Below are positions 9,201 through 47,806 of a DNA stretch of 64,000 nucleotides, in pieces. Both the position numbers and the translations under genes were made by a program. The notes below the pieces were generated by a model. It did no database searches and was not told the origin of the DNA. It was given only the letters and a program-made list of their open reading frames with translations. The DNA comes from Octopus sinensis (Eukaryota): NCBI RefSeq assembly GCF_006345805.1, contig NC_043023.1:12834001-12898000 (forward strand), given 5' to 3'. The stretch's first letter is position 1; each line of letters opens with the position of its first letter.

Positions 9201-9222
9201 CCATTATTCCCAGAGAATAGTT

Positions 9223-14401: not shown

Positions 14402-15541
14402 TTAACCTGTATGAATACGTTTGTGACTGATTAAATTGCTATTTTTAGGAAATGACTTACCACAGATATCACAGTGATATGGTTTTTCCGCAGTATGTAT
14501 ACGTCTGTGAACAGACAAACTATCACTTCTGGAGAATGATTTACCACAGATATCACAGTGATAGTGATATTCTTTTTCCCCAGTGTGTATACGTTTGTGT
14601 TTAGGTAATTCACTACTGTAAGAAAATGATTTACCACAGATATCACACTGATATGGCTTCTCACCCGTATGAATACGTTTGTGCACTTTTAAAGTAGAAG
14701 GCTGAGAAAATGATTTACCACAGATATTACAACGATATGGCTTCTCTCCTGTATGAATACGTAGGTGTCTGGTTAAATGGCTATTTTCAGAGAATGATTC
14801 ACCACAGATATCGCAATGATATGGCTTCTCACCTGTATGAATACGTTTGTGCACTTTTAAAGAAGAAGGCTCAGAAAATGATTTGCCACAGATATCACAC
14901 TGATATGGTTTTTCCCCAGTATGAATACGTATATGACTAGTCAAATCACTATTTCTAGTGAATGATTTACCACAGATATCACAATGATGGGGCTTTTCTC
15001 CTGTATGAGTACGTTTGTGTCTAGGTAAATCAGCACTTCGAGAAAATGATTTACCACAGATATCACACTGATATGGTTTCTCTCCTGTATGGGTAGGTTT
15101 GTGTTTAGGTAAATCAGATCTTCGAGAAAATGACTTACCACAGATATCACAATGGAATGGCTTCTCTCCTGTATGAATAAGTTTGTGATCAGTTAAATTG
15201 CTATTTTCAGAAAATGATTTACCACAGATATCACACTGATATGGTTTCTCTCCTGTATGGGTACGTTTGTGTCTAGGTATATCAGCTCTTCGAGAAAATG
15301 ACTTACCACAGATATCACACTGATATGGTTTCTCTCCTGTATGAGTACGTTTGTGTTGAGTCAAGTGACTAATTTGAGAGAATGATTTACCACAGATATC
15401 ACACTGATGTGGCTTTTCCCCAGTATGAATAAATTTGTGATGAGTTAAAGAGCTATTGTCAGAAAATGACTTACCACAGATATCACAGTGATATGGTTTT
15501 TCTCTTTTATCATTGATTTTTGCTTTAGTTGAATTATTCAT
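14402..15541 (-). CDS. ZF-B: 379-aa C2H2 zinc-finger protein, 13 fingers
   Basis: Open ATG-TAA ORF with 13 C-x2-C-x12-H-x3-H units and TGEKP linkers. The stop is a GAA>TAA change in a linker, leaving a 14th finger at 14315-14401 untranslated. Confidence 0.9.
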
Positions 15542-16654
15542 TATGAGAGAATAATTTCGTTATACATATCACAATGATAGTATCTGTTTCATTTCTATGA
15601 ATGTTTGCGTTCAAATACATCAGAGAATAATTAAATGTTATGTTACTTTCATTGGTGATCTTGCTTAATATCTAAAACAGAAGATATAAATTGGTTAATC
15701 TTTTGTAAAGTTACTCAAACTTAACCTGTAGGTTCATCATCATCTCTACATTCCAGATGGCAAAAAAAATGTTGCTCTTAACTCCATCATCCAGAAGAAA
15801 TATTTCCCCATCATTCATCAAAGATTTTATTTATATAAAGAGGCTGATGTATTGATGAATGTGCCTTATGAATATATGGTCTTCCTTTAATTGATGAAAG
15901 TCAATCAAAATATCAGACACACCTCTGAATGAAGAAATTTCTTTTAAATCAACATGGTATGATATTATGAAATAGGAAAAAAATTCATTTCTATGAATAT
16001 ATTTGTGTTGCTATTTTCAGAGATTAATTTAATGCTATGCTTCTTTCATCTGTGATTTTGCTTAATATCTAAATCAAGAGGTGACAATTGTCTACCCCTT
16101 TGTAAAGTCATCCAAGCTTAATTAACCTGTAAAACAATCATCTCCTCTATATTCCAGACAGCAAAGACTTCAAATTGTTGCTGTTAATTCCATCGTCCAG
16201 AAGAAATATTTTGCTGTTGTTTTTCACAGATTTCCTTTATAAGATGAGTTTGATGTATTGATGAATGCTCCTTATAAATATATCATCTTCCTTTGGTTGA
16301 TGGGAGCTGATAAAATATCAGAGGCACATCTGAATGAAGTAATTTCTTTCATATCAACAGGATGTTATATTCTGAAATAGGAAAAAAAAGAAGCAGTGAG
16401 ATAAAGAGAATCATTAAACGACATAGTAATTCAACATTGCAAATCTTACAACATCAACACTGTCATCCATTTAATGTCTATGTTTGCAGGGGTCAGAATC
16501 CATTGAGGCATTGAAACTTTTACAACATTCTGTATAGAGATTTCTCTATTGTTCCGCCATGCGAAAAATTTTGGTGAAGGGTTAATTAAAATTTTGGCTA
16601 TGGTGGATCCAATCTACTTCATGCGTGCAAGATTCACTGCAAATATATTTGTAT

Positions 16655-16691
<37 letters not shown>

Positions 16692-17599
16692 CAAGTATTA
16701 AGAGAGGGACCACATGTGGTCACTCTAACGCTAGAAATAGATCCGCAAAGGGAATCCACCACTAAAGAATTGTTCTCAAGCATTAATTCAACATGCCAAG
16801 AATGTAAGGGGGCAGGACAAATGAAAAATAACGAAAAAATGGATTAACTCTATACAATTGTTTCATCGTTAATAGATTGTGTAATTTTACTTACAAATCA
16901 TTTTCGAATCATCGGTAGAGTATATCAAAAACATAATTTGCTGAACCAAACGCCAAAATCCATACGAAATTGATGTTATTAATTAATATTCAATTTCTTT
17001 CACCCTTACACACACACATATATGTATATATAATAGTACATATATATGCATAAATACATACGTATACGTACATACATGTTTGTTTATATTCGCGAGTGCC
17101 CGTTCTGCGTATTTTATTTTTTAGTATAAAATAGTTAAAAAAATAGATTAATCGTTCTAATTTTCTCTGGTACTATTTAAAAAGTGTGGTCCCGGTGCGC
17201 GCTCTCGCGCAAGTCAGTCGTGATTAGTCGATCCTACAACGACTACCTAGCAAAGTAAATAAAACACAAAATAAATAATTGTTTTCACACAAAGTAAATA
17301 ATTTTTTGGCGATCCATCGGTATAGGTACCGTGAGTGGCTTTGTTTACATTTCTGAAGATAACAGAAACCCTTTTCTCCCACCACTAACACAAACCTTAA
17401 CCATAACCCCCCACCCCCATATATATAAAAAAAAGACACTTTCTTGAAATGTATCTGGTACTTCCGGTACCTATACCGAAGTTACGCTCATTTTTTTAAA
17501 ACAGAGTAAAGAAAACAAAGTACAAAGTAAGGATCGATTAGTCACGACTAGCTACTGCGGATGCGCGCACCTGGACCTCTCTTCTTAAATAGTACCCTT

Positions 17600-17873
17600 G
17601 TAAGAGTTAGCACTTCCTTCTCTAAGCTTGGATTCGAAATCGAGTCCAAGAATCATCGGTCGTCAAACACCGATGCATGTATAGGCGCGAAATTAAGAAT
17701 CCCTTAGTCCTGACATTGCTCAGGTCGGAGGTCAAAGGGAGATGATCAATCAGTTTTTCTCAGAACAAAGGGATTCTTAATTTCGCGCCTATACATGCAT
17801 TGGTATTTGACGACCGATGATTCTTGGATTCGATTTCGAATCCAAGCTTAGAGAAGGAACTGCTAACTCTTAC
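17600..17873. mobile_element. 274-bp foldback MITE, TSD ACCCTT
   Basis: Same arms and TSD as 6927-7200. Confidence 0.8.
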
Positions 17874-18489
17874 ACCCTTGTATGTTTGTTTATATTCGCG
17901 AGTGCCCGCTCTCCGTATTTTATTTTAAAAAATAGATCAATCTTTCTAATTTTCTCCCTTATGTATTCTGGATATATTTCCCATTTCCTAACTTTTCTCA
18001 CAAGTAAGCGTCATTATCTTGGAGAGGTGCGCGGTACTACTAGCGAACAGTGGTCCAGGTGCGCGCATCCGTGCTAGCTAGTCGTATGTAGTCGATCCTA
18101 CGACTTTTTAACCCTAACCTTAGTTTGTTAACAAAAATAATGTATTTTCTTAGTTTTAAAGATTGTAGGATCGACTACTTACGACTAGCAAGCGCGGATA
18201 CGCGAGTGCACGCACCGGGACCACTGTTCGCTAGTAGTACCTTATTATTATTGGTATTATCATCATCATTACAGCCTTAAAATAAATCGTTGTCAACTTA
18301 CCGTATTCAGATACAAACAACGAGTCAACGATCGTTAATTAAGCACCTTAATTAATTAATTAAGGAAAGTTATATCCCTTTATATGGTTATAGTTCTTCA
18401 ATTTTCTATGACTGGTTCGTTTCGTTCCTGTGTCTTCTTTGTCCCATTCTGTCAACGATTTTACCTTCAAGGTAATATAGAATATATAC

Positions 18490-18650
18490 ACTCACATATT
18501 CTAATCTACGACCGTTTCCAGCGCACGAACTGGACCCCGTCGCAGACACCGAAAGAAAGAAGGCATCTTTGACTTATATCTTCCTGATGTGACGTCAGGC
18601 CGTTGCACTTTCCATCCGTTTCTGACGTCATTTTCTCTCCTGTCCAATCA
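18490..18650 (-). promoter_or_regulatory. Putative promoter/exon 1 of ZF-B
   Basis: TGACGTCA at 18590 and 18623, CCAAT at 18644, donor GTGAGT at 18495; the ETS-like site is altered (ACTTTCCAT). Confidence 0.55.
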
Positions 18651-19899
18651 TTGTCCTTCCTTCACACTTCTCTCTCATCTAAAGAACAATGCTTGGATAC
18701 CTCTTGGGGATCTTTTCGGTTTGACCGGCAGTTTTTTAAAATAATTTCCACGTAACTAAACACTTTTAAACTTCGTATACTGGTAGAATGTGTTTATAAA
18801 ACATTTTTCTCTTGGCTTTATTGAGAAGATTCTATAGTTTGTAAGATATTTGGGATCTTTTCGGTTTGAACGGCAGTTCTTAAAAAGAATGTCCCCGTGT
18901 TAGGGTCAGAAGTGGGGAGAAAAGGCTTTCTGTTATCTTCACAAATGTAAACAAAGTCACGTGTGTACTTATACATCGAAGCATCGCCTTATTATTTACT
19001 TTGTCTAAGAAAAAGAAGGATCTTTTTGGTTTGACCGGCAGTTTTTCTAGCTGCGTCATATGAAATTGTCACCCATAATTATGACCCTAGTATCGATCTA
19101 TTGCATTTCAATCTGTGTTAGGGTAAGGGGTGGGGGAAGGGTATCTTTTTTTCTTCAAAAATGTAAATAAACCCAATCTGTTTCTTAAACGAGGGACATA
19201 TTCATAAGGCACATAATGTTTTTTTTACCTCAATAGACGTCATTGATTGGTAGAAATTGCAGACAAAAAACAACAAATATGTTACAAACCACAGAATTTT
19301 CTCAATAAAGCCAAGGAAAAAGATGCTTCATAAATACATTCTATCTGTATACGAAGTTTAAAATTTTTTTAGTTACCTAGAAATTTAAAAACCTGCCGTT
19401 CATACCGAAAAGATCCCCATTATTCCCAGAGAACAGTTGGCGAACCAGATGGCAGCACCAGGCCCGAATCTGATCTGGTAGAGTTTCTACAGCTGGTTGG
19501 TGTTAGGAAGGGCATCCAGCTGTAGTAACTCTGCCAGATCAGATTGGAGCCTGGTGCTGCCTCCTGGTTCGCCAGTACTCAATCAAATCCTGCAACCCAT
19601 GCTACAATGGAAATCGGACGTTAAACGATGATGATGATGATGATCACAGTGATCTATTTTCTCTCATGTATAATTAAGTTGCTACTTTGAGAGAACCGTC
19701 AGTGGATGGAATGTAGTGTCGTGTGTTCGATATTCGAAGGTTGATTAATTCTTCCAATGACAACGGGGAGGGAAAAGATGGCCCCGCTCCCAACATAATG
19801 CACAATTACGAAAGGAAATAGAGAAGCGCTGGGATTTTTACCTTTCCACCTACAGATTTAAAAGATAATTCTTAAATCTGCTGAAAATTAGGAAGATTC

Positions 19900-20480
19900 A
19901 TCATCATCATCATCATCATTTAGCGTCCGTTTTCCATGCTAGCATGGGTTGGACGTTTCAACTGGGGTCTGTGAAGCTTGAAGGCTTCATCAAGCCCAGT
20001 CAGAGCTGGCAGTGTTTCTACAACTGGATGCCCTTCCTAACGCCAACCACTCCGTGAGTGTAGTGGGTGCTTCTTACGCGCCACCCGCACAGGTGCCAGA
20101 CAGAGCTGGCAAACGGCCACGAACGGATGGTGCTTTTACGTGCCACCGACACGGGGGCCAGACAGAGCTGGAAAACGGCCACGAATGGATGGTGCTTTTA
20201 CGTGCCACCGACACGGGGGCCAGACAGAGCTGGCAAACGGCCACGAACGGATGGTGCTTTTACGTGTCACTGGCACGGGGGCCAGGCGAGGCTGGCAACG
20301 GACACGAACGGATGGTGCTTTTACGTGCCACCGACACGGGGGCCAGGTGAGGCTGGCAACGGACACGAACGGGTGGTGCTTTTACATGCCACCGACACGG
20401 AGGCTAGACAGTGCGGTGCCGAAAACGACCACGATCGGATGGTTCGCTTAACCACAGCTGCAATTCCTACTGATGTTGAT
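19900..20480 (-). mobile_element. (GAT)n-tailed SINE-like repeat with ~61-bp VNTR
   Basis: Paralog of 9687-10380 with fewer units. Confidence 0.8.
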
Positions 20481-23546: not shown

Positions 23547-25678
<2,132 letters not shown>

Positions 25679-26497
25679 CGGAAAGAAGCCCGTCATATAT
25701 ATGTATATATATATATATGCACGTGTGTGTGTGTGTGTGTCTGTGTTTGTCCTCCTAGCATTGCTTGACAATCGTTGCTGGTTTGTCTATGTCCCCGTCA
25801 CTTAGCAGTTCGGCAAAAGAGACCGATAGAATAAGTACTGGGCTTACAAAGAATAAGTCCCGGGTCGAGATGCTCTATAAAAGGCGGAGCTCCAGCATGG
25901 CCGCAGTCAAATGACTGAAACAAGTAAAAGAGAAAGAGAAAGAGAGAATAAGCATGCACAAAGAATTTTATTTTTACAAAATGTTTAATAACAAAACATT
26001 GAAAATGTCCAGTACACAAAAGAAGAGCTGTCTGTCACAGGAAACTGTAGAGAATCCTCCTCATCATCATTGTATAACATCTGTTTTCCCTGCTAGCATG
26101 CAGTCTGATCTGGCAGTGTTTCTACAGCTGGATGCCCTTCCTAAACGCCAACCACTCTGTGAGTGTAGTGGATGCTTTTTATGTGCCACCAGCACAGGGG
26201 CCAGGGAGGGTGGCATCGGCCACGATCGGTCGGTGCTTCTTACGTGCCACCAGCACGGAAGTCAGTTGTGCTGGAGCTGGCAACGGCCACGTTCGGATGG
26301 TGCTTTTTACATGCCACTGGCACAGGTGCCAGGGGAAGCTGGCAGCGGCCACGATCGGTTGGTACTTTTTACGTGTCACCGGCACTGGTATCACAACTAC
26401 AATTTCCATTGATGTTGATTGATTTCGATTTGGATTCTGATTCTCACTTGCCTCAACAGGTATTCACAAGTAGAGTTTTGAGTCCCTAGAAGGAAAG

Positions 26498-27646
26498 CTA
26501 TGCATAAGTGGACTGGCTACATCCCAGGTAGAGGCCATGGGTTATGGTCTCACTTGTCCTGCCGGGTTGTAATAAATTTTGATATTGATACGATTTCACC
26601 TGTGTATGAATACTCAGATGTGTGCTTAATTGGCGTTTTTGAGAGAATGACTCACCACAAATATCACAACGATATGGTTTTTCACCTGTATGAATACGTT
26701 TGTGCTCCTTTAATGTATAATGCTGGGAAAATGATTTACCACAGATATCACACTCAAATGGTTTTTCCCCAGTATGAATACGTAGGTGTCTGGTTAAAGA
26801 GCCATTTTCAGAGAATGATTCACCACAGATATCACATTGATATGGTTTTTCCCCAGTATGAATACGTCTGTGACTAGTCAAATTATTATTTCTACTGAAT
26901 GATTTACCACAGATATCACAATGGTATGGCTTCTCTCCTGTATGAATAAGTTTGTGATCAGTTAAATTGTTACTTCTAGAAAATGATTCACCACAGATAT
27001 CACAATGGTATGGCTTTTCCCCAGTATGAATAAATTTGTGATGAGTTAACTTGCTATTTTCAGAAAATGATTTACCACAGATATCACACTGATATGGTTT
27101 CTCTCCTGTATGAGTACGTTTGTGTCTAGGTAAAGCAGCTCTTTTAGAAAATGACTTACCACAGATATCACACTGATATGGTTTCTCTCCTGTATGAGTA
27201 CGTTTGTGTTTAGGTAATTCAGCACTTCGAGAAAATGATTTACCACATATATCACACTGATATGGTTTCTCTCCTGTATGAGTACGTTTGTGTCTAGGTA
27301 AATCAGAGCTTTGAGAAAATGATTTACCACAGATATCACACTGATATGGTTTCTCTCCTGTATGAGTACGTTTGTGTTTAGGTAAGTCAGCACTTCGAGA
27401 AATTGATTTACCACAGATATCACACTGATGCGGCTTGTCCCCAGTATGAATAAATTTGTGATGAGTTAAAGAGCTTTTGTCAGAAAATGATTTACTACAG
27501 ATATCACACTTATAAGGTTTGTCTCCAGTATGAACACGTATGTGCCTACTTAGATTACCACTTTTAGAGAATGAGTTACCACAGATATCACACTGATATG
27601 GCTTCTCTCTTTTATCATTGATTTTTGCTTTAGTTGAATTATTCAT
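26498..27646 (-). CDS. ZF-E: 382-aa C2H2 protein, 12 fingers plus a read-through tail
   Basis: Open ORF; the ancestral stop after HTQV is AAA here (26594-26596), adding [32 protein letters not shown]. Confidence 0.9.
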   Translation of the reverse strand: MNNSTKAKINDKREKPYQCDICGNSFSKSGNLSRHIRVHTGDKPYKCDICSKSFSDKSSLTHHKFIHTGDKPHQCDICGKSISRSADLPKHKRTHTGEKPYQCDICGKSFSQSSDLPRHKRTHTGEKPYQCDICGKSFSRSAELPKHKRTHTGEKPYQCDICGKSFSKRAALPRHKRTHTGEKPYQCDICGKSFSENSKLTHHKFIHTGEKPYHCDICGESFSRSNNLTDHKLIHTGEKPYHCDICGKSFSRNNNLTSHRRIHTGEKPYQCDICGESFSENGSLTRHLRIHTGEKPFECDICGKSFSQHYTLKEHKRIHTGEKPYRCDICGESFSQKRQLSTHLSIHTQVKSYQYQNLLQPGRTSETITHGLYLGCSQSTYA

Positions 27647-28766
27647 AATGAGAGAATAATTTCGTTATACATATCACAATGATAGTATCTGTTTCATTTC
27701 TATGAATGTTTGTGTTCAAATGCATCAGAGAATAATTAAATGTTATGTTACTTTCATTGGTGATCTTGCTTAATATCTAAAACAGAAGATATAAATTGGT
27801 TAACTCTTTTGTAAAGTTACTCAAACTTAACCTGTAGGTTCATCATCATCTCTACATTCCAGATGGCAAAAAAAATGTTGCTCTTAATTCCATCATCCAG
27901 AAGAAATATTTCCCCATTGTTCGGCGAAGATTTTATTTATATAAAGAAGCTGATGTTTTTATGAATGTGTCTTATGAATATATGGTCTTCCTGTAATTGA
28001 TGAAAGTCAATAAAAATATCAGACACACATCCCGAATGAAGAAATTTCTTTTAAATCAACATGGTATGATATTCTGAAATAGGAAAAAATTCATTTCTAT
28101 GAATATATTTGTGTTGCTATCTTCAGAGAATAATTTAATGGTATGCTTCTTTCATCTGTGATCTTGCTTAATATCTAAATCAAGAGGTGACAATCGTCTA
28201 ACGCTTTGTAAAGTTATCCAAGCCTTATTAACCTGTAAAACAATCATCTCCTCTATATTCCAGACAGCAAAGACTTCAAATTGTTGCTGTTAATTCCATC
28301 GTCCAGAAGAAATAATTTGCTGTTGTTTTTCACAGATTTCCTTTATAAGATGAGTTTGATGTATTGATGAATGCTCCTTATAAATATATCATCTTCCTTT
28401 GGTTGATGGGAGCTGATAAAATATCAGAGGCACATCTGAATGAAGTAATTTCTTTCATATCAACAGGATGTTATATTCTGAAATAGAAAAAAAAAGAAGC
28501 AGTGAGATAAAGAGAATCATTAAACGACATAGTAATTCAACATTGCAAATCTTACAACATCAACACTGTCATCCATTTAATGTCTATGTTTGCAGGGGTC
28601 AGAATCCATTGAGGCATTGAAACTTTTACAACATTCTGTATAGAGATTTCTCTATTGTTCTGCTGTGGGAAAAATTTTGGTGAAGGGTTAAATAAAATTT
28701 TGGCTATGGTGGATCCAATCTACTTCATGCGTGCAAGATTCACTACAAATATATTTGTATACACAA

Positions 28767-28798
<32 letters not shown>

Positions 28799-29023
28799 TT
28801 AATCAATATAGGGTGGCAAGGAAAATTTTGTAGAATTTTATTGCCACCAGCGGCCCAGCGGGAAAAAATTAAATAGTCATAGACCATTTTTAAGTTCAAC
28901 ATTAACAATTAAGGAACGGCCATAATAGGCCATTCACCCACTAGAAATAACAGCCAAAGCTTCTACCGCAAATAAAGATTAATTCCGTAAACAGGAGAAA
29001 ATTAAAAAAACATTTACCCTGTA

Positions 29024-29130
29024 ATTTCTTGTACGGTATACCGTTTCATCCGCTGTTTAATGGTAAACTAACCTGATTAAATTAAATCAAGCCAATCCTC
29101 CATAAGCCCTCGGATTCTTCAGCAAGAAAT
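29024..29130 (-). ncRNA. Type I hammerhead ribozyme, copy 1
   Basis: Sense: AUUUCUUG-CUGAAGA-AUCCG-(58 nt)-CGGAU-GAAA-CGG-UAUA-CCG-UA/CAAGAAAU. Stem I 8 bp, stem II 5 bp, stem III 4 bp, intact core. Predicted cut between 29032 and 29031. Confidence 0.85.
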
Positions 29131-29514
29131 AGCTCAAGTCGGGACAGATATATACACGAGGCATACCCAATCTTGCCAAGTCAATATCTGACCTAAAATT
29201 TTCAAATCGTCGCACTCGCGCCAAATTTATCGGCAGCAAATAGATATCAGCCGTCGATTCCATTACGGAATTAACCAAAAAATTCATAATTAATCAATAT
29301 AGGGTGGCAAGGAAAATTTTGTAGAATTTTATTGCCACCAGCGGCCCAGCGGGAAAAAATTAAATAGTCATAGACCATTTTTAAGTTCAACATTAACAAT
29401 TAAGGAACGGCCATAATAGGCCATTCACCCACTAGAAATAACAGCCAAAGCTTCTACCGCAAATAAAGATTAATTCCGTAAATAGGAGAAAATTAAAAAA
29501 ACATTTACCCTGTA

Positions 29515-29621
29515 ATTTCTTGTACGGTATACCGTTTCATCCGCTGTTTAATGGTAAACTAACCTGATTAAATTAAATCAAGCCAATCCTCCATAAGCCC
29601 TCGGATTCTTCAGCAAGAAAT
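29515..29621 (-). ncRNA. Type I hammerhead ribozyme, copy 2
   Basis: Identical motif at +491. Confidence 0.85.
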
Positions 29622-30005
29622 AGCTCAAGTCGGGACAGATATATACACGAGGCATACCCAATCTTGCCAAGTCAATATCTGACCTAAAATTTTCAAATCG
29701 TCGCACTCGCGCCAAATTTATCGGCAGCAAATAGATATCAGCCGTCGATTCCATTACGGAATTAACCAAAAAATTCATAATTAATCAATATAGGGTGGCA
29801 AGGAAAATTTTGTAGAATTTTATTGCCACCAGCGGCCCAGCGGGAAAAAATTAAATAGTCATAGACCATTTTTAAGTTCAACATTAACAATTAAGGAACG
29901 GCCATAATAGGCCATTCACCCACTAGAAATAACAGCCAAAGCTTCTACCGCAAATAAAGATTAATTCCGTAAACAGGAGAAAATTAAAAAAACATTTACC
30001 CTGTA

Positions 30006-30112
30006 ATTTCTTGTACGGTATACCGTTTCATCCGCTGTTTAATGGTAAACTAACCTGATTAAATTAAATCAAGCCAATCCTCCATAAGCCCTCGGATTCT
30101 TCAGCAAGAAAT
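30006..30112 (-). ncRNA. Type I hammerhead ribozyme, copy 3
   Basis: Identical motif at +982. Confidence 0.85.
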
Positions 30113-30677
30113 AGCTCAAGTCGGGACAGATATATACACGAGGCATACCCAATCTTGCCAAGTCAATATCTGACCTAAAATTTTCAAATCGTCGCACTCG
30201 CGCCAAATTTATCGGCAGCAAATAGATATCAGCCGTCGATTCCATTACGGAATTAACCAAAAAATTCATAATTAATCAATATAGGGTGGCAAGGAAAATT
30301 TTGTAGAATTTTATTGCCACCAGCGGCCCAGCGGGAAAAAATTAAATAGTCATAGACCATTTTTAAGTTCAACATTAACAATTAAGGAACGGCCATAATA
30401 GGCCATTCACCCACTAGAAATAACAGCCAAAGCTTCTACCGCAAATAAAGATTAATTCCGTAAACAGGAGAAAATTAAAAAAAAAAACATTTACCCTGTA
30501 ATTTCTTGTACGGTATACCGTTTCATCCGCTGTTTAATGGTAAACTAACCTGATTAAATTAAATCAAGCCAATCCTCCATAAGCCCTCGCGAGTGCGACG
30601 ATTTGAAAATTTTAGGTCAGATATTGACTTGGCAAGATTGGGTATGCCTCGTGTATATATCTGTCCCGACTTGAGCT

Positions 30678-30784
30678 ATTTCTTGCTGAAGAATCCGAGG
30701 GCTTATGGAGGATTGGCTTGATTTAATTTAATCAGGTTAGTTTACCATTAAACAGCGGATGAAACGGTATACCGTACAAGAAAT
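30678..30784 (+). ncRNA. Type I hammerhead ribozyme in the inverted segment
   Basis: Stem I 30678-30685/30777-30784, CUGAAGA 30686-30692, stem II 30693-30697/30756-30760, GAAA 30761-30764, GUA 30774-30776. Confidence 0.85.
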
Positions 30785-30903
30785 TACAGGGTAAATGTTT
30801 TTTTTAATTTTCTCCTGTTTACGGAATTAATCTTTATTTGCGGTAGAAGCTTTGGCTGTTATTTCTAGTGGGTGAATGGCCTATTATGGCCGTTCCTTAA
30901 TTG

Positions 30904-30949
<46 letters not shown>

Positions 30950-31317
30950 CAAGTATTAAGAGAGGGACCACATGTGGTCACTCTAACGCTAGAAATAGAT
31001 CCGCAAAGGGAATCCACCACTAAAGAATTGTTCTCAAGCATTAATTCAACACGCCAAGAATGTAAGCGGGCAGGACAAATGAAAAATAACGAAAAAATGG
31101 ATTAACTCTATACAATTGTTTCATCGTTAATAGATTGTGTAATTTTACTTACAAATCATTTTCGAATCATCGGTAGAGTATATCAAAAACATAATTTGCT
31201 GAACCAAAGGGAGATTTCTCTATTGTTCTGCTGTGGGAAAAATTTTGGTGAAGGGTTAATTAAAATCTTGGCAAGGATGGATCCAATCTAATAAGATTCA
31301 CTACAATATATTTGTAT

Positions 31318-31366
<49 letters not shown>

Positions 31367-33691
31367 AGTATTAAGAGAGGGACCACATGTGGTCACTCTA
31401 ACGTTAGAAATAGATCCACAAAGGGAATCCACCACTAAAGAATTGTTCTCAAGCATTAATTCAACACGCCAAGAATGTAAGAGGGCAGGACAAATGAAAA
31501 ATAATTTTTTGGCGATCCTTCGGTATAGGTACCGTGAGTGGCTTTGTTTACATTTCTGAAGATAACAGAAACCCTTTTCTCCCACCACTAACACAAACCT
31601 TAACCATAACCCCCCCATATATAAGAAAAAAAGACACTTTCTTGAAATGTATCTGGTACTTCCGGTACCTATACCGAAGTTACGCTCATTTTTTCAAACA
31701 AAGAATATAATTTTTTTAAAACAAAGTAAATAAAACAAAAATATAAAGTAAGGATCGACTAGTCACGACTAGCTACTGCGGATGCGCGCACCTGGACCTC
31801 TCTTCTTAAATAGTACCCTTGTAAGAGTTACCACGTCCTTCTCTAAGCTTGGATTCGAAATCGAGTCCAAGAATCATCGGTCGTCAAATACCAATGCATG
31901 TATAGGCGCGAAATTAAGAATCCCTTTGTCCTGACATTGCTCAGGTCGGAGGTCAAAGGGAGATGATCAATCAGTTTTTGTCAGCACAAAGGGAAAGAGA
32001 TTTCTCTATTGTTCTGCTGTGGGAAAAATTTTGGTGAAGGGTTAATTAAAATCTTGGCAAGGATGGATCCAATCTACTTTACGATTCACTACAAATATAT
32101 TTGTATACACACACACACATATATATATATATACAAGTATTAAGCGAGGGACCACATGTGGTCACTCTAACGCTAGAAATAGATCCACAAAGGGAATCCA
32201 CCACTAAAGAATTGTTCTCAAGCATTAATTCAACACGCCAAGAATGTAAGCGGGCAGGACAAATGAAAAATAACGAAAAAATGGATTAACTCTATACAAT
32301 TGTTTCATCATTAATAGATTGTGTAATTTTACTTACAAATCATTTTCGAATCATCGGTAGAGTATATCAAAAACATAATTTGCTGAACCAAACGCCAAAA
32401 TCCATACGAAATTGATGTTATTAATTAATATTCAATTTCTTTCACCCTTACACACACACATATATGTATACATAATTATACATATATATGCATAAATACA
32501 TACGTATACGTACATACATGTTTGTTTATATTCGCGAGTGCCCGTTCTGCGTATTTTATTTTTTAGTATAAAATAGTTAAAAAAATAGATTAATCGTTCT
32601 AATTTTCTCCGGTACTATTTAAAAAGTGTGGTCCCGGTGCGCGCACTCGCGCTAGTTAGTCGTGATTAGTCGATCCTACAACGACTACCTACCAAAGTAA
32701 TTAAAACACAAAATAAATAATTTTTTTACACAAAGTAAATAATTTTTTGGTGATCCTTCGGTATAAGTACCGTGAGTGGCTTTGTTTACATTTCTGAAGA
32801 TAACAGAAACCCTTTTCTCCCACCCCTAACAGAAACCTTAACCATAACCCCCCATATATATATATATATAAAAAAGACACTTTCTTGAAATGTATCTGGT
32901 ACTTCCGGTACCTATACCGAAGTTACGCTCATTTTTTCAAAGAAAATAATTTTTTTAAAACAAAGTAAATTAAACAAAAATACAAAGTAAGAATCGACTA
33001 GTCACGACTAGCTAGCGCGCCCACCGGGACCTCTCTTCTTAAATAGTACCCTTATATGTTTGTTTATATTCGCGAGTGCCCGTTCTCCGTATTTTATTTT
33101 TTAGTATAAAATATTTAAAAAATAGATTAATCTTTCTAATTTCCTCCATACTTTATGTATTCTGGATATATTTCCCATTTCCTAACTTTTTCTCACAAGT
33201 AAGCGTCATTATCTTGGAGAGGTGCGCGGTACTACTAGCGAAGAGTGGTCCGGTGCGCGCACTCACGCATCCGTGCTAGCTAGTCGTATGTAGTCGATAC
33301 TACGACTTTTAAACCCTAACCTTAGTTTGTTTACAAAAATAATGTATTTACTTAGTTTAAAAAATTGTAGGATCGACTACTTACGACTAGCAAGCTCGGA
33401 TACCCGAGTGCGCGCACCGGGACCACTGTTCGCTAGTACTACCTTATCATTATTGGTATCATCATCATCATTACAGCCTTAAAATAAATCTTTATCAACT
33501 TACCGTATTCAGATACAAACAACGAGTCAGCGATCGTTAATTAAGCACCTTAATTAATTAATTAAGGAAATTTATATCCCTTTGTATGGTTATAGTTCTT
33601 CAATTTTCTATGACTGGTTCGTTTCGTTCCGGTGTCTTCTTTGTCCCATTCTGTCAACGATTTTACCTTCAAGATAATATAGAATATATAC

Positions 33692-33852
33692 ACTCACATA
33701 TTCTAATCTACGACCGTTTCCAGCGCACGAACTGGACCCCGTCGCAGACACCGAAAGAAAGAAGGCATCTTTGACTTATATCTTCCTGATGTGACGTCAG
33801 GCCGTTGCACTTCCGATCCGTTTCTGACGTCATTTTCTCTCCTGTCCAATCA
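33692..33852 (-). promoter_or_regulatory. Putative promoter/exon 1 of ZF-E
   Basis: TGACGTCA at 33792 and 33825, ACTTCCG, CCAAT at 33846, donor GTGAGT at 33697. Confidence 0.6.
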
Positions 33853-33909
33853 TTGTCCTTCCTTCACACTTCTCTCTCAACTAAAGAACAATGCTTGGAT
33901 ACCTTTTGG

Positions 33910-34380
33910 GGATCTTTTCGGTTTGACCGGCAGTTTTTAAAAATAATTTCCACGTAACTAAACACTTTTAAACTTCGTATACTGGTAGAATGTGTTTATA
34001 AAACATCTTTTTCTCCTGGCTTTATTGAGAAAATTCTATCGTTTGTAAGATATTTGGGATCTTTTCGGTTTGACCGGCAGTTTTTAAAAATAATTTCCAC
34101 GTAACTAAACACTTTTAAACTTCGTATACTGGTAGAATGTGTTTATAAAACATCTTTTTCTCCTGGCTTTATTGAGAAAATTCTATCGTTTGTAAGATAT
34201 TTCGGATCTTTTCGGTTTGACCGGCAGTTTTTAAAAATAATTTCCACGTAACTAAACACTTTTAAACTTCGTATACTGGTAGAATGTGTCTATTAAACGT
34301 TTTTCTCTTGGCTTTATTGAGAAAATTCTATTGTTTGTAAGATATTTCGGATCTTGTATTGGTTTGAACGGCAGTTTTTT
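33910..34380. repeat. ~147-bp tandem expansion of a MITE left arm, about 3 copies
   Basis: GGATC starts at 33910, 34057, 34204 and 34349. Confidence 0.8.
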
Positions 34381-36448
34381 TTAATAATTTCCACGTGTTA
34401 GGGTTAGAAGTGGGGAGAAATGGCTTTCTGTTACCTACAAAGTCACGTGTGTACTTATATATCGAAGCATCGCCTTATTATTTACTTTGTGTAAAAAGAA
34501 AAGGATCTTTTCGGTTTGACCGGCAGTTTTTTGTAGCGGTGTCATATGTAATTGTCACCCATAATTATGACCCTAGTATCGATCTATTGCATTTCAATTT
34601 GTGTTAGGATTAGGGGTGGGGGAAGGGTATCTTTTTTTCTTCAAAAATGTAAATAAACCCAATCCGTTTCTTAAACGAGGGGCGTATTCATAAGGCACAT
34701 AATGCTTTTTTTACCTCAATAGACGTCATTGATTGGTTGAAAGATGCTTTATAAATACATTCTATCTGTATACGAAGTTAAAATTTTTTAGCTACCAAGA
34801 AATTTAAAAACCTGCCGTTCAAACCGAAAAGATCCCCATTATTTCCAGAGAAAAGTTGTCGAACCAGATGGCTGCACCAAGCTCCAATCTGATCTGGTAG
34901 AGTTTCTACAGCTGGTTGGTGTTAGGAAGGGCATCCAGCTGTAGAAACTCGGCCAGATCAGATTGGAGCCTGGTGCTGCCTCCTGGTTCGCCAGTCCTCA
35001 ATCAAATCGTGCAACCCATGCTACAATGGAAATCGGACGTTAAACGATGATGATGATGATGATCACAGTGATCTATTTTCTCTCATGTATAATTAAGTTG
35101 CTACTTTGAGAGAACCGTCAGTGGATGGAATGTAGTGTCTTGTGTTCGATATTCGAAGGTTGATTAATTCTTCCAATGACAACGGGGAGGGAAAAGATGG
35201 CACCGCTCCCAACATAATGCACATTACGAAAGGAAATAGAGAAGCGCTGGGATTTTTACCTTTTGACCTACAGATTTAAAAGATAATTCTTAAATCTGCA
35301 CAAAATTAGGAAGATTGATCCATTTTTTAAAAGTATTTTATACTAACAAATAAAATATGGAGAACGGGCACTCGTGAATATAAACAGATCATGTCGTGTA
35401 GCCAGCTGTAGATGTCTCCTTAGGCTGAATTACATCAACATCTCTCTATATATAAATGGCCAAATGTCTGTCTGTGTGTGCGTGTCCTTTATAAAATCCA
35501 CAATTTTTCAGTTAGAGGGCTCGCACTTTCTATGGTCATTCAAAACCGTCCAAGGGTGGTCGTGCACATCTATACATTTCCCTAGTCACCCCGCAACGCC
35601 ATTAAATATATATATAAATGGCAAAATGTCTCTGTGTGTGTCTTTTATACAAATCCACAATTTTTCAGTTAGAGGGCTCGCACTTTCTATGGTCATTTAA
35701 AACCGTCCAAGGGTCGTCGTGCACATCTTCACATTTCCCCAGTCACCCCACAAAGCCATTAAAAAATCAAGAGAACAAGGATCTCTGAACAAATAACAAT
35801 ATTTATTTTTCTGTCTGTACAAGCGTTACATCTCTGGACAATCAGTAGCTAGGTCGCCTTGGTGCGGAAGCAGCAGAGACAGTTTAATCACGATTGTGAA
35901 GGCATACTTCATAGATTCACTGAAGTCATGGATCGCCTTCAGAATTCCAGCCACACGGAGCTGGTCAAGTTGCGTCCGGCTTGGTTGGAAGCAGGGGCGA
36001 AGAGGGCGAGAGGACAGCGGTCAAGCCTAGCTGATGCTGATGACTGCACATGTGCATAAGGGGCTTCCGGCAGGCTCTTACCCCTGTGCATGCGTGGATG
36101 AAAATCCTAAAATGGTGTCTGGGACCAGGCGTCACTACAAGGCTCCCACTTGAGTGCGGAGCATGAAAATAGAAAGATTATAGTGACACCAGAAATAAGA
36201 TGGCTACCGATTACCCAGAAGATGTGGCACAAAATATGACAATTCAAAAGAAAATGTAATCACAGTATACATATAGGCGCAGGAGTGGCTGTGTGGTAAG
36301 TAGCTTGCTTACCAACCACATGGTTCCAGGTTCAGTCCCACTGCATAGCACCTTGGGTCAGTATCTTCTACTATAGCCTCAGGCCAACCAAAGCCTTGTG
36401 AGTGGATTTGGTAGACGGAAACTGAAAGAAGCCTGTCGTATATTTGTA

Positions 36449-38932: not shown

Positions 38933-40318
38933 TCACAATGTATGAATACGTTTATGTTTAGGCAGGGTACTACTGTGAGAGAATGATTTACCACAGATAT
39001 CACACTGATATGGTTTCTCTCCTGTATGAGTACGTAGGTGTCCAGTTAAAGTGCCAATTTCAGAGAATGACTCACCACAGATATCACAGTGATATGGTTT
39101 TTTCCCAGTATGAATACGTTTACGTTTAGGCAAGTCACTACTGTGAGAGAATGATTTACCACAGATATCGCAATGGTATGGCTTCTCTCCTGTATGAGTA
39201 CGTTTGTGTCTAGGTAAGTCAGCACTTCGAGAAAATGATTTACCACAGATATCACACTGATATGGTTTTTCTCCAGTATGAACACGTCTGTGCCTTCTTA
39301 GATCACAACTTTGAGAGAATGAATTACCACAGATATCACAGTGATATGGTTTTTCCCCAGTATGAATACGTTTATGTTTAATTAAGTCACTGCTGTAAGA
39401 GAATGATTTACCACAGATATTACAATGGTATGGCTTCTCTCCTGTATGAATATGTTTGTGACTGATTAAATTGCTATTACGAGAGAATGATTCACCACAG
39501 ATATCACATTGATATGGTTTTTCCCCAGTATGAATACGTATATGACTAGTCAAATGACTATTTGCAGTGAATGATTTACCACAGATGTCACAATGGTATG
39601 GCTTCTCTCCTGTATGAATACGTTTGTGATCAGTTAAACTGTTACTTATAGAAAATGATTTACCACAGATATCACAATGATGGGGCTTTTCTCCTGTATG
39701 TGTACGTTTGTGTTTATTTAAGTCACTACTGGTAGAGAATGATTTACCACAGATATCACACTGATATGGTTTCTCTCCTGTATGGGTACGTTTGTGTTTA
39801 GGCAAGTCACTACTGTGAGAAAATGATTTACCACAGATATCACACTGATATGGTTTCTCTCCTGTATGAGTACGTTTGTGATGAGTTAAAGTGCTATTTT
39901 GAGAAAATGATTTACCACAGATATCACACTGATGCGGCCTTTCCCCATTATGAATAAATTTGTGATGAGTTAAATTGCTATTTTCAAAAAATGATTTACC
40001 ACAGATATCACACTGATGTGGCTTTTCCCCAGTATGAATAAATTTGTGATGAGTTAAAGTGCTATTTTGAGAAAATGATTTACCACAGATATCACACTGA
40101 TGCGGCTTTTCCCCAGTATGAATAAATTTGTGATGAGTTAAATTGCTATTGTCAGAAAATGATTTACCACAGATATCACACTGATATGGTTTTTCTCCAG
40201 TATGAACACGTCTGTGCCTTCTTAGATTATAACTTTGAGAGAATGACTTACCACAGATATCACAGTGATGTGGCTTCTCTCTTTTATCATTGATTTTTGC
40301 TTTAGTTGAATCATTCAT
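38933..40318 (-). CDS. ZF-F: 461-aa C2H2 protein, 16 fingers (finger 14 has H>R)
   Basis: Open [16 protein letters not shown]...HTL. A ~17-nt linker deletion at 38940/38941 frameshifts off a 17th finger (38863-38940). Confidence 0.9.
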
Positions 40319-42277: not shown

Positions 42278-44244
42278 TTGTCCTTCCTTCACACTTCTCT
42301 CTCATCTAAAGAACAATGCTTGGATACCTTTTGGGGATCTTTTCGGTTTGACCGGCAGTTTTTTAAAATAATTTCCACGTAACTAAACACTTTTAAACTT
42401 CGTATACAGGTAGAATGTGTTTATAAGACATTTTTCTCTTGGTTTTATTGAGAAGATTCTATAGTTTGTAAGATATTTGGGTTTTTTTCGGTTTGAACGA
42501 GAGTTTTTAAAAATAATTTCCACGTAACTAACACTTTAAACTTCGTATACTGGTAGAATGTGTTTATAAAACATCTTTTTCTCTTGGCTGTATTGAGAAA
42601 ATTCAACGGTTTTTAAGATATTTGTTGTTTTTTTTCTTCAATTTCTGCAATTTCAACCAATCACTGACGTTTATTGAGGTAAAAAAAAACATTCTGTGCC
42701 GTATGAATATGTCCCTCGTTTAAGAAACAGATTGGGTTTATTTATATTTGTGAAAAAAAATATATACCCTTCCCCTAAAACAGATTGAAATGCAATAGAT
42801 CGATACCAGGGTCGTAATTATGGGTGACAATTTCATATGGCACTACTAGAAAAAACTGCCGTTCAAACCGAAAAGATCCGTTTTCACTTCTATATGATTA
42901 CTTTAACATTGAAGGGTTCACATAATCCCATTATTTACTGGCAGGGTCACTAGCACGCCAGACAAAATGCTTCACAATATTTCTTTCGTCAATAGCTTTG
43001 TTGAGGGATCGTTTCCTTTTGAACGGCAGTTTTCAACACAATTTCTAGTTAACTAAACACTTTAAAATTTCGTTTACTGGGAGAATGTGTCAACAGAAAA
43101 CATTTTTTTCTCTTTTCTTGAGAAAATTGTAATTTGTAAGTTGTCTCTGTTTGATCTGGCAGTGTTTCTACAGCTGGATGCCCTTCCTAACGCCAACCAC
43201 TCCAGAAGTGTAGTGGGTGCTTTTTATGTGCCACCTGCACAGGTGCCAGGGGAGTCCGGCATCGGCTATGATCAGTTGGTGCTTTTAACGAGCTACCGAC
43301 ACATTTTCTTAATTGTTGTCAGTTTCCCGCTTCGAAAAATAATTACTGTAACATCGAGAGGTTCACAGAATTCTATTATTTACCTTATTATTATTATTAG
43401 TAGTAGTAGTAGTATTATCACCATTACAGCCTTAAAGTAAATCTTTATTAACTTACCGTATTCACAAATAAGCAACGAGTCAGTGAATCAGTAATTAAGC
43501 ACCTTAATTAATAATTTAATTGTTGAACCGGGGTTGAAATGTAGCAGAAGTTATTTTCCTTTACATGATTGTCTTCCTTCAGTTCTCCAATAGGTGGCTC
43601 TACTGACTGGTGGGATTCGTTGTAGTTTCCTCTTTGTCCCTTTCTGTCAAGAACTTCACTTTCAAGGGTTTTCAAATTTTTACAAGATTCTTTCAATAAA
43701 GTGTACTCACACATTCGGATCTTTTCGGTTTGAACGGCAGTTTTTTCTTGCAGTGTCATATGAAATTGTCACCCATAATTATGACCCTAGTATCGATCTA
43801 TTGCATTTCAATCTGTTTTAGGGTTAGGGGTGGGGAGGAGGGTATTTTTTTTCTTCACAAATGTAAATAAACCCAATATGTTTCTTAAACGAGGGACATA
43901 TTCATACGGCACAGAATGTTTTCACCTCAATAGACGTCATTGATTTGTTGAAATTTTCACCCATAATTATGACCCTAGTATCGATCTATTGCATTTCAAT
44001 CTGTTTTAGGTTTAAGGGTGGGGGGAAGGCTATCTTTTTTTCTTCACAAATGTAAATAAACCCAATCTGTTTCTTAAACGAGGGACATATTCATAAGGCA
44101 CAGAATGTTTTTCACCGCAATGGACGTCTTAAGGTGATACAGCCAAAGAAAGCAAGCAAAATCTGAGTGGAACTTGGAGCAGCACTCTGGCTTGCCAACT
44201 CAGGTCACAATTTCCCACCCAGGCATGCAAAGGAAATGAACACT

Positions 44245-44390: not shown

Positions 44391-45172
44391 AACACAACAA
44401 AGACAAAATCAATGTCACTTAAAACTTTTATTCCTTATTCCCATTCCTTTATTCTCTCATAACAAATTCCTCAAAAATCCAGCACAATCCTCTTCAGAAA
44501 CCAAAGTCATCTCTGTGTTGATATATTTAGATATATAAATGATATTGAAGTTGTGATTCAGGAATTTCATGTTGACATCCAAGAACCTGAAGTTGATAAT
44601 GTCAAGCTTGAAGAGGAATAAACCCTATCTTTTAGCAGACAAAATATTCATAATTCTTGTCATCATCATTTAGTGTCCGCTTTCCATGCTAGCATGGGTT
44701 GGACGGTTCAACTGGGGTCTGGGAAGCCAGAAGGCTGCACCTGGCCCAGTCTGATCTGGCAATGTTTCTACGGCTGGATGCCCTTCCTAATGCCAACCAC
44801 TCCGTGAGTGTAGTGGGTGCTTTTTACGTGCCACCATTACAGGCGCCTGATGGGGCTGGCAACGGCCACGATCGGATGGTGCGTTTCACGTGCCAGCCGC
44901 ATGGGGGCCAGGCGAGTCTGGCAACGGCCATGATCGGATGGTGCTTTTTACATGCCACCAGCACTGGTATCACAGCTGCAATTTCCATTGATGTTGGTTG
45001 ATTTTGATTTTGATTCTGATTCTCACTTGCCTCAAAAGGTCTTCACAAGTAGAGTTTTGTGTCACAAGAAGATAAGGTATGCATAAGTGGACTGGCTACA
45101 TCCCAGGTAGAGGCCATGGGTTGTGGTCTCACTTGTCCTGCCGGGTTGTAATAAATTTTGATATTGATACGA

Positions 45173-45655
<483 letters not shown>

Positions 45656-47806
45656 TGTCCTTCCTTCACACTTCTCTCTCAACTAAAGAACAATGCTTGG
45701 ATACCTTTTGGGGATCTTTTCGGTTTGACCGGCAGTTTTTTTAAATAATTTCCACGTAACTAAACACTTTTAAACTTCGAATACTGGTAGAATGTGTTTA
45801 TAAAACATCTTTTTCTATTGGCTTTATTGAGAAAATTCTATAGTTTGTAAGATATTTGGGATTTTTTCGGTTTGAACGGCAGTTTTTTAAAATAATTTCC
45901 ACGTGTTAGGGTTAGGAGTGGGGAGAAAAGGCTCTCTGTTATCTTCCCAAATGTAAACAAATTCACGTGTGTACATATATATCGAAGCATCGCCTTATTA
46001 TTCGCTTTGTGTAAAAAGAAAAGGATCTTTTCGGTTTGACTGGCAGTTTTTTGTAGCGGTGTCATATGAAATTGTCACCCATAATTTTGACCCTTGTATC
46101 GATCTATTGTATTTCAATCTGTGTTAGGGTTAGGGGTGGGGAAAGGGTATCTTTTTTTCTTCAAAAATGTAAATAATCCCAATCTGTTTCTTAAACGAGG
46201 GACATAGTCATAAGGCACATGGTTTTTTTTACCTCAATAGACGTCATTGATTGGTTGAAATTGCAGAAAAAAAACAACAAATATGTTACAAACTACGGAA
46301 TTTTCTCAATAAAGCCAAGGAAAAGGATGCTTTATAAATACATTCTATCTATATACGAAGTTTAAAATTTTTTTAGTTACCTAGAAATTTAAAAACCTGC
46401 CGTTCAAACCGAAAAGATCCCCATTATTCCCAGAGAACAGTTGGCGAACCAGATGGCAGCACCAGGCTCCAATCTGATCTGGTAGAGTTTCTACAGCTGG
46501 TTGGTGTTAGGAAGGGCATCCAGCTGTTGAAACTCTGCCAGATCAGATTGGAGCCTGGTGCTGCCTCCTGGTTCGCCAGTCGTCAATCAGATCGTGCAAC
46601 CCATGCTAGAACGGAAATCGGACGTTAAACGATGATGATGATGATGATCACAGTGATCTATTTTCTCTCATGTATAATTAAGTTGCTACTTTGAGAGAAC
46701 CTTCAGTGGATGGAATGTAGTGTCGTGTGTTCGATATTCGAAGGTTGATTAATTCTTCCAATGACAACGGGGAGGGAAAAGATGGCGCCGCTCCTAACAT
46801 AATGCACAATTACGAAAGGAAATAGAGAAGCCCTGGGATTTTTACCTTTTGACCTACAGATTTGAAAGATAATTCTTAAATCTGCAGAAAATTAGGAAGA
46901 TTCATCATCATCATCATCATTTAGCGTCCGTTTTCCATGCTTGCTTGGGTTGGACGGTTCAACTGGGGTCTGTGAAGCTTGAAGGCTTCATCAAGCCCAG
47001 TCAGAGCTGGCAGTGTTTCTACGGCTGGATGCCCTTCCTAACGCCAACAACTCCGTGAGTGTAGTGGGTGCTTTTTACGTGCCACCCGCACAGGTGCCAG
47101 ACAGAGCTGGCAAACGGCCACGAACGGATGGTGCTTTTACGTGTCACCGGCACGGGGGCCAGGCGAGGCTGGCAACGGACACAAACGGGTGGTGCTTTTA
47201 CGTGCCACCGACACGGGGGCCAGACAGAGCTGGCAAACGGCCACGAACGGACGGTGCTTTTACGTGTCACCGGCACGGGTCCAGACGAGGCTGGCAACGG
47301 ACATGAACGGGTGGTACATTTACGTGCCACCGACACGGGGACTAGGCAGAGCTGGCTCACGGCTACGAACGGATGGTGCTTTTTCGTGTCACCGGCACGG
47401 GGGCCAGGCGAGGCTGGCAACGGACACGAACGGGTGGTGCTTTTACGTGCCACCGACACGGGGGCCAGGTGAGGCTGGCAACGGACACGAACGGGTGGTG
47501 CTTTTACGTGCCACCGACACGGGGGCCAGACAGAGCAGGCAAACGGCCACGAACGGATGGTTCGCGTAACCACAGCTGCAATTCCCACTGATGTTGATCG
47601 ACCTCAATTTGGTTCTGCTTTCTGATATATGAATTGATTTGCTTTGATTTTGATTTTGACTGTTCTCACTGGTCTTGCTAAGTCTTCCATTTCTAAAAGT
47701 ATTTTATACTAACAAATAAAATATGGAGAACGGGCACTCGCGAATATAAACAGATCATGTCGTGTAGCCAGCTGTAGATGTCTCCTCAGGCTGAATTACA
47801 TCAACA

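Follow-up and report, generated by a model that had tools for sequence, protein, structure and literature searches.

A probable recent retrozyme insertion with type I hammerhead motifs in a presumed intron of an Octopus sinensis zinc-finger gene

Introduction

What brings three self-cleaving ribozyme motifs into the presumed first intron of a zinc-finger gene, and do they act on that gene or serve an element of their own? The question is raised by a stretch of 64,000 nucleotides (nt) of Octopus sinensis DNA (RefSeq assembly GCF_006345805.1, contig NC_043023.1, positions 12,834,001 to 12,898,000), which we refer to as the window and in which position 1 is the first letter. The window holds an AT-rich cluster of C2H2 zinc-finger (ZF) units in tandem duplication, with every unit on the minus strand. 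In one of these units, ZF-E, an array of tandem repeats lies between the presumed first exon and the coding exon. The original prediction described this array as carrying three hammerhead ribozymes that could cut the ZF-E pre-mRNA. The prediction left open what kind of element the array is, and our analysis suggests one. The array is probably a recent insertion of a metazoan retrozyme of the kind without long terminal repeats (non-LTR), that is, a non-coding and non-autonomous element whose 491-nt unit contains one type I hammerhead.

Metazoan retrozymes are tandem repeats of 150 to 450 bp that contain type I hammerheads, have a low GC content, and give rise to self-paired circular RNAs, which are expressed in a coral, a mussel, and the axolotl (PMC7229834). 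A 2026 preprint reports consensus lengths of 51 to 972 bp, with at most seven units in 75% of families, and relates retrozymes to the pseudo-LTRs of Penelope-like elements (10.64898/2026.07.22.740005). As hallmarks, Penelope-like elements show insertion into (TA)n, a partly tandem structure, and an inverted copy, truncated at its own 5' end, that adjoins the 5' end of the insertion (PMC8557442). The usual animal hammerhead has a helix I of 6 bp, a helix II of 4 bp, and a helix III of 1 to 2 bp with a palindromic loop, and opposite-strand hammerhead pairs 100 to 700 bp apart have been reported (PMC4209133).

Results

Array of tandem units and an inverted copy

The architecture of the insert, its ribozyme motif, its insertion site, and the corresponding empty sites can be read directly from the DNA (Table 1). 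Tandem Repeats Finder (TRF) reported a 491-bp period with 3.6 copies and 99% matches at 28795-30589. Using blastn, we resolved this interval into three direct full copies (28795-29285, 29286-29776, and 29777-30267) and a partial copy of 322 bp (30268-30589), next to an inverted copy of 321 bp (30588-30908) with 99.7% identity. A single substitution is all that separates the three full units. At 30588/30589, the truncated fourth unit and the inverted copy are joined head to head through a short CG/CTCG microhomology. The direct array and the inverted copy terminate at different offsets of the unit, and both do so against (TA)n. The outer boundaries of the insert are uncertain by 1 to 2 nt because its ends overlap the (TA)n tract.

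A near-perfect palindrome spans the head-to-head junction, and fold prediction turns it into a hairpin of about 213 bp (-398 kcal/mol, z = -41.8). Transcription of the palindrome from one strand or the other would be expected to yield long double-stranded RNA. Because complex tandem and inverted insertions of the Penelope type often trouble shotgun assemblies (PMC8557442), and because the palindrome arms are nearly identical, we asked whether the head-to-head structure, and possibly the repeat count as well, could be an assembly artefact of a simpler insertion. This seems very unlikely. The junction is a specific microhomology join, and the inverted arm stops at an offset of its own (107), where it forms a separate UUAA/(TA)n junction, as real priming on two strands would predict.

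The unit has a GC content of 36.9%. We rejected the idea of a protein-coding unit, since the longest open reading frame (ORF) of the insert encodes 66 amino acids (aa) and no ORF gave a Pfam match. No terminal direct repeats were found in the insert other than the units themselves; neither the PBS (primer-binding site) nor the PPT (polypurine tract) motif of LTR elements was searched for. Nor did we find RNA polymerase III (Pol III) A or B boxes or a tRNA-like element or promoter in the unit, which is weakly compatible with a dependence on read-through transcription. The predicted monomer is strongly self-paired, with a fold of -147 kcal/mol for the linear form (z = -5.3 against shuffles) and of -142 kcal/mol for the circular form, in which 61% of bases are paired. 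E-value matches to microRNA (miRNA) families at the edges of the array were rejected as low-complexity hits on the flanking CA/TA microsatellites.

Hammerhead motifs in the array

In E-value mode, the Rfam model of the type I hammerhead (RF00163) aligned to the minus strand at 29026-29128, 29517-29619, and 30008-30110. The alignment runs from helix I (UUCUUG/CAAGAA) through the CUGAAGA box, a helix II (AUCC...GGAU) with a long insertion, and GAAA to helix III (CG-GUAUAC-CG), which is followed by U, A, and the cleavage site. We defined the core by C3 U4 G5 A6 N7 G8 A9, G12 A13 A14, the pair A15.1-U16.1, and an H17 that is not G. By this definition the conserved core, CUGAAGA ... GAAA-CGG UAUA CCG-U-A/C (with the final slash marking the cut), is complete in four of four copies. 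The fourth lies in the inverted arm on the plus strand, with a sequence identical to that of the other three, and the original prediction had not described it. An antisense transcript of the locus would also be expected to self-cleave, after 30776. The truncated fourth unit cannot cleave, because its hammerhead is missing the 5' strand of helix I and the CUGAAGA box.

When the motif was folded as an isolated 116-nt sequence, the three-way junction was both the minimum-energy and the centroid structure (-35.8 kcal/mol, z = -5.5). The predicted helices are an open-ended helix I of 8 bp, a helix II made of a 5-bp closing stem and a 14-bp distal hairpin, and a helix III of 4 bp (ACGG-UAUA-CCGU) followed by A17. 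A stable 4-bp helix III predicts that the ribozyme would be active as a single motif. The supplement of PMC7229834 held no matching ribozyme sequence.

On its own, the Rfam score would not reach significance in a window of 64 kb. We therefore wrote a descriptor that called for a helix I of at least 5 bp, CUGANGA, a helix II of at least 4 bp, GAAA, a helix III with 3 bp or more, and a U whose next base is not G. All of its four matches in the 64 kb lie in the array. Among 300 dinucleotide shuffles there was one match, a mean of 0.003 per window. The Rfam E-value matches, the fold, and the descriptor thus agree with the original prediction that three tandem hammerheads lie on the same strand as ZF-E. 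The cleavage ends that it had named (30013, 29522, and 29031) proved exact, with H17 at 30014, 29523, and 29032.

Insertion into a microsatellite that is uninterrupted in the paralogs

When the paralogs were aligned with blastn to ZF-E on either side of the insert, the two alignments converged on a (CA)n(TA)n microsatellite. The empty site is preserved in at least five further copies of the duplicated unit, where the paralogs read ...TTTGTATACACACACACATATATATATACAAGTATTAAGAGAGGGACC..., and in ZF-E the (TA)n tract is split by the 2,109-bp insert. The expectation that paralogs without the insertion exist was therefore correct, with an uninterrupted site in at least five other unit copies of the window. 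The right half of the split tract is long, which could reflect a target duplication or an expansion of the microsatellite.

Three observations together argue for transposition and not for local slippage: the insert sits precisely within (TA)n, it includes a truncated copy in inverted orientation, and the paralog sites are empty. From sequence divergence, the insertion is, by our estimate, very recent. The full units differ by one substitution and the paralog introns by 6 to 11%, so the insertion should be much younger than the gene duplications. One pair of units is a possible exception to this order, namely, the B and G units, which are 99.2% identical.

The ZF-E intron also contains the segment with the (CA)n(TA)n target three times (28643-28798, 31211-31355, and 31996-32133, each with the next 300 to 1000 bp), compared with once in the paralogs as aligned to it. 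This indicates that the intron was lengthened by local duplication in addition to the retrozyme.

Identity of the element

Several features of the array correspond to those of a metazoan retrozyme. It consists of head-to-tail 491-bp repeats, three full and one truncated, with a type I hammerhead in each full unit, and it is low in GC, non-coding, and predicted to yield a highly self-paired monomer. Its (TA)n target, partial tandem structure, and inverted 5'-truncated copy at the 5' end are those of a Penelope-like insertion. A conserved intronic ribozyme is a poor description of the array, as the insert is absent from all other unit copies in the window. If the array is a mobile element, then its location in the intron is explained by transposition and not by a regulatory role in ZF-E.

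A number of observations weigh against this identification. RF00163 scored 21.4 bits (E = 0.23 over 9 kb), below its gathering score of 34, and we attribute the shortfall mainly to the model, which reads most of the 65-nt helix II as inserted sequence. In the 491-nt context the active fold differs from the minimum-energy structure and costs +7.3 kcal/mol to enforce, and in folds of long transcripts the inverted arm can sequester one unit. Because the copies are identical, they offer no covariation support. In a metagenome scan, the 3' half of the hammerhead had 0 matches, while a gapped core pattern had 67, about the number estimated for chance, of which 0 satisfied even a relaxed descriptor. 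The 491-bp monomer exceeds the classical range of 150 to 450 bp, the family is present at one locus in the window, and no ORF for a reverse transcriptase (RT) or GIY-YIG endonuclease, as an autonomous Penelope-like element would have, was found in the window. Finally, the 10.1-11.1 pair is A-U. In the usual hammerhead this pair is G-C. In addition, Rfam at the gathering threshold gave no matches in the whole 64-kb window.

Some of these points would also suit an ordinary tandem duplication or minisatellite with a hammerhead-like motif that arose by chance or has no catalytic activity: the sub-threshold Rfam score, the exceptional length of the helix II insertion, the A-U pair at 10.1-11.1, and a single locus without covariation. 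We consider such an origin highly improbable. The motif has a full core with helices of 8, 5, and 4 bp that is rarely expected by chance, the isolated sequence adopts the hammerhead as its minimum-energy fold, and the precise (TA)n insertion points to transposition, as do the truncated copy in inverted orientation and the paralog sites that remain empty. We therefore retain the retrozyme as the probable identity of the array. As for RT and GIY-YIG, ORFs of at least 180 aa in the window are limited to the ZF arrays and a single frame across a 62-bp tandem repeat, which implies that the element is non-autonomous and that its mobilizing partner must be inferred.

A possible route to the insertion

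The steps of the route that we propose follow the published model for the family, and it is from that model that we infer self-cleavage, circles, and a mobilizing enzyme; the presumed intron and its transcription are assigned from sequence signals. At GUA/C, the hammerheads would cut a multimeric sense transcript into monomers of 491 nt that end in 5'-OH and 2',3'-cyclic phosphate; the present locus would yield two such monomers per transcript. A host RNA ligase would close the monomers into highly base-paired circles. The RT and GIY-YIG endonuclease of an autonomous Penelope-like element could then copy circular or multimeric RNA into nicked (TA)n targets, with priming at UUAA sites, which match (TA)n, on either strand of the target. 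Priming of this kind would account for the difference between the two 3' ends and for the head-to-head junction. The outcome would be a direct array of 3.65 units joined head to head to an inverted 5'-truncated copy. Under this model the hammerheads would serve the element's own processing, and any cutting of ZF-E, promoter-driven monomers, or double-stranded RNA (dsRNA) from the palindrome would be side effects.

The ZF-E gene and its presumed first intron

Whether such side effects arise depends on the gene around the array. A 350-bp promoter/exon-1 block occurs in six copies in the window with 98 to 99% identity (blastn). About 185 bp of this block, including the donor AT/GTGAGT (exon/intron), are almost invariant in six of six copies, compared with 89 to 96% identity between paralogs in the intron-like sequence around it, which fits a conserved promoter and 5' exon. 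In the ZF-E copy, two TGACGTCA palindromes occur together with an ATTGG box and a TATAAG element. A candidate acceptor consisting of a polypyrimidine tract and AG, TCTTCTGTTTTAG/AT, has its AG at 27778-27777 with the exon starting from 27776, and it is conserved in six of seven copies. It is plausible from these signals that 33697-27777 is a single intron of ZF-E.

ORF and block conservation bore out the minus-strand coding exon of ZF-E (26498-27646) and the promoter/exon-1 copy upstream of it, and the anatomy that had been proposed, with three sense-strand hammerheads between the two, was likewise confirmed. The description of ZF-E as intact held in part: its 382-aa frame is open, but its last finger (26498-26600, minus strand) is degenerate relative to the paralogs and is followed by non-finger sequence and then a stop, with the rest of the ORF intact. 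The protein is 71% identical to its paralogs. In a homology search with the full protein, the matches were generic C2H2 proteins from many animals at no more than 62% identity, and an N-terminal query of 56 aa matched two fragments. A published account of C2H2 expansions in cephalopods contained nothing on how these genes are structured.

Potential effects on ZF-E

The original prediction proposed that the sense hammerheads could cut the ZF-E pre-mRNA cotranscriptionally and attenuate this paralog, that the ZF promoter could drive monomers or circles, and that the inverted arm would give long dsRNA, a potential ADAR or small-RNA substrate. In its strong form this means measurable attenuation, the ZF promoter as the main driver of monomers or circles, and a palindrome that feeds ADAR or small-RNA pathways. 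Parts of this are physically sound. The hammerheads lie on the strand of the ORF, between the conserved donor and the candidate acceptor, with their cleavage sites 3.7 to 4.7 kb downstream of the former and 1,255 to 2,237 nt upstream of the latter. At the 3.5 to 4.1 knt/min quoted for RNA polymerase II (Pol II) on long mammalian genes, the distance from site to acceptor corresponds to tens of seconds of travel, and the hammerhead of a coral retrozyme has a cleavage rate of about 0.8 per min, a similar timescale. Intronic ribozymes that cut fast abolish splicing, and the one in the Cpeb3 intron reduces the mRNA of its host gene (PMC10919898). The apparent lack of a Pol III promoter would also leave room for the ZF promoter as a driver, and the predicted hairpin of about 213 bp makes the dsRNA idea physically sound, in line with what had been anticipated for the inverted arm. 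Judged from the sequence, attenuation of ZF-E, promoter-driven circles, and a dsRNA hairpin are all physically possible.

Other evidence argues against these effects, and in the strong form we regard them as unlikely. In the experiments that underlie the exon-tethering model, introns cut by a hammerhead were spliced normally and slower ribozymes were without effect. Given that fast ribozymes abort splicing and slow ones do not, the outcome for ZF-E would depend on the cleavage rate, and in long transcripts alternative pairings compete with the active fold. Look-ups of the exact products of the E, B, F, and G ORFs returned zero contigs or transcripts. Intronic retrozymes are common in Xenopus, where 42 to 44% of copies are intronic, yet depleted relative to intergenic DNA (10.64898/2026.07.22.740005), and an insertion as young as this one may simply await purging.

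We likewise think it doubtful that the locus amounts to a natural experiment in which a young sense retrozyme makes intron 1 of ZF-E self-cleaving, the host Pol II promoter drives circles at the expense of the paralog's output, and the hammerhead is an active variant of an unusual kind that combines a 65-nt helix II with A10.1-U11.1. If it did, the cluster would supply its own controls in the form of near-identical paralogs without the interruption.

Every sense unit further contains an AATAAA and an ATTAAA hexamer (29824, 29333, and 28842 on the minus strand, and other sites), which are potential premature polyadenylation signals in the presumed intron.

Other features of the cluster

Over 5.7 kb, the B unit (13800-19600) and the G unit (51084-56884) share 99.2% identity, and the 379-aa proteins that they encode are the same. 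This points to a very recent duplication, spaced by about 37 kb, that took place long after the remaining paralogs had split. The truncated promoter/exon-1 copy (45496-45904) ends 4 nt beyond the splice donor, with the letters TATGTGA, and runs directly into the interior of a ZF array (44747-45500). This join looks like a deletion of the intron and the 5' fingers and not like a processed copy.

Three families of short repeats accompany the units. Directly upstream of the ZF-E promoter/exon-1 block is a 147-bp tandem repeat (33906-34346, 3.3 copies), and its relatives lie beside other promoter blocks, near 8345-8681, 18704-18898, 42330-42623, and 55991-56181. Near-perfect palindromes of about 135 bp occur upstream of each unit (34857-34993, 9222-9354, 19438-19571, 46442-46575, and 56724-56857), with a half-copy at 26101-26144. 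They reached 46 bits with the Rfam model mir-449 (gathering score 60) and matched other miRNA models on both strands, and they look like a foldback repeat resembling a miniature inverted-repeat transposable element (MITE) and not like a conserved miRNA. Lastly, GC-rich 62-bp tandem repeats lie 3' of the ZF ORFs (26173-26389, 9777-10340, 19997-20398, 46998-47561, and 57283-57684) and give rise to spurious long ORFs such as 47019-47588.

Table 1. Coordinates of the insert, its hammerhead motifs, and the surrounding ZF features in the window
Feature	Position	Strand	Remarks
Whole retrozyme-type insert	28799-30907	-	2,109 bp; boundaries located against empty paralog sites
Left (TA)n half of target microsatellite	28780-28798		(CA)n before it at 28768-28779
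Right (TA)n half of target microsatellite	30908-30944		Longer than the whole tract in paralogs
Repeat unit 1	28799-29285	-	3'-most in sense orientation; array end ...ATTGATTAA adjoining (TA)n
Repeat unit 2	29286-29776	-	Bears the sole substitution among full units (offset 198)
Repeat unit 3	29777-30267	-	Full
Unit 4, 5'-truncated	30268-30589	-	Offsets 1-318
Inverted 5'-truncated partial unit	30588-30907	+	Offsets 426-107; end ...ATTGTTAA adjoining (TA)n
Near-perfect palindrome	30374-30908		Arms about 213 bp, loop about 106 nt
Hammerhead 1 (type I)	30006-30112	-	Predicted cut between 30014 and 30013
Hammerhead 2 (type I)	29515-29621	-	Predicted cut between 29523 and 29522
Hammerhead 3 (type I)	29024-29130	-	Predicted cut between 29032 and 29031
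Fourth complete hammerhead, inverted arm	30678-30784	+	Predicted cut after 30776
Presumed ZF-E promoter and non-coding exon 1	33698-33880	-	Exon end 33698; donor GTGAGT 33697-33692
Presumed intron 1 of ZF-E, with the insert inside	27777-33697	-	5,921 nt; from sequence
ZF-E coding ORF	26498-27646	-	382 aa, about 12 C2H2 fingers
ZF ORFs	3947-4654, 14402-15541, 24132-25478, 26498-27646 (ZF-E), 38933-40318, 51686-52825	-	From the ORF listing
350-bp promoter/exon-1 block copies	7751, 18398, 33600, 42025, 55685; truncated copy 45496		First five 1.7-6 kb upstream of ZF ORFs

Discussion

The value of this locus depends in part on whether its ribozymes are active. If they are, it offers a clean and very recent example of retrozyme integration at (TA)n, with apparent two-strand priming at UUAA and a head-to-head junction. 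If the reading of the insertion is correct, it would also support the proposed dependence of animal retrozymes on Penelope-like machinery. Active ribozymes would further provide a built-in test of whether intronic self-cleavage lowers host mRNA, since one paralog has the insert and at least three paralogs with intact ORFs do not. Otherwise, the array would be one more intronic transposon insertion.

Among known systems, plant LTR retrozymes offer an analogy, in that they are non-autonomous retroelements that propagate through circular RNAs processed by hammerheads (PMC4918200), as we suppose for the octopus element. They have type III hammerheads in their LTRs, a PBS and PPT, 4-bp target duplications, and a GC content above 55% (PMC4918200). 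We count none of these features as applying to the octopus insert.

Classical hammerhead satellites include satellite 2 of newts, Sm-alpha of Schistosoma, and pDo500 of cave crickets. They form large arrays and have their own promoters, of the small nuclear RNA (snRNA) type or of Pol III. The present array differs in being one insertion of 3.65 units in which no tRNA-like or A/B-box promoter was detected. HH9 and HH10 of amniotes, in turn, are conserved intronic self-cleaving ribozymes. The hepatitis delta virus (HDV)-like ribozyme of Cpeb3 is similar to the octopus motif as a sense-strand self-cleaving sequence in an intron, where the rate of cleavage relative to splicing can tune host mRNA (PMC10919898). 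However, Cpeb3, HH9, and HH10 are single, ancient, and conserved in orthologous introns, whereas the octopus motif is present three times in a very recent transposon insertion.

Penelope-like elements resemble the insert in targeting (TA)n, in being arranged partly in tandem, in having an inverted 5'-truncated copy against the 5' end, and in carrying a hammerhead within the unit that is repeated (PMC4209133; PMC8557442). Unlike those elements, the insert is without an RT or GIY-YIG ORF, and its hammerhead is canonical with a full helix III, in contrast to the "minimal" dimer-dependent hammerhead of animal Penelope-like elements.

With metazoan non-LTR retrozymes the insert has in common head-to-tail repeats with type I hammerheads, low GC, the absence of an ORF, a strongly self-paired monomer, few units per locus, and a presumed intronic position, which is frequent among them (PMC7229834; 10.64898/2026.07.22.740005). 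Its unit of 491 bp is longer than the 150 to 450 bp of the classical members, yet within the 51 to 972 bp of the 2026 survey. Its helix II of 65 nt differs from their helix II of about 4 bp and a loop, and its helix III is a stable 4-bp stem. Circles and expression are known for metazoan retrozymes, whereas the octopus element is known from the sequence of one locus. The kind of element is already known, and the array in ZF-E is probably a further member of it.

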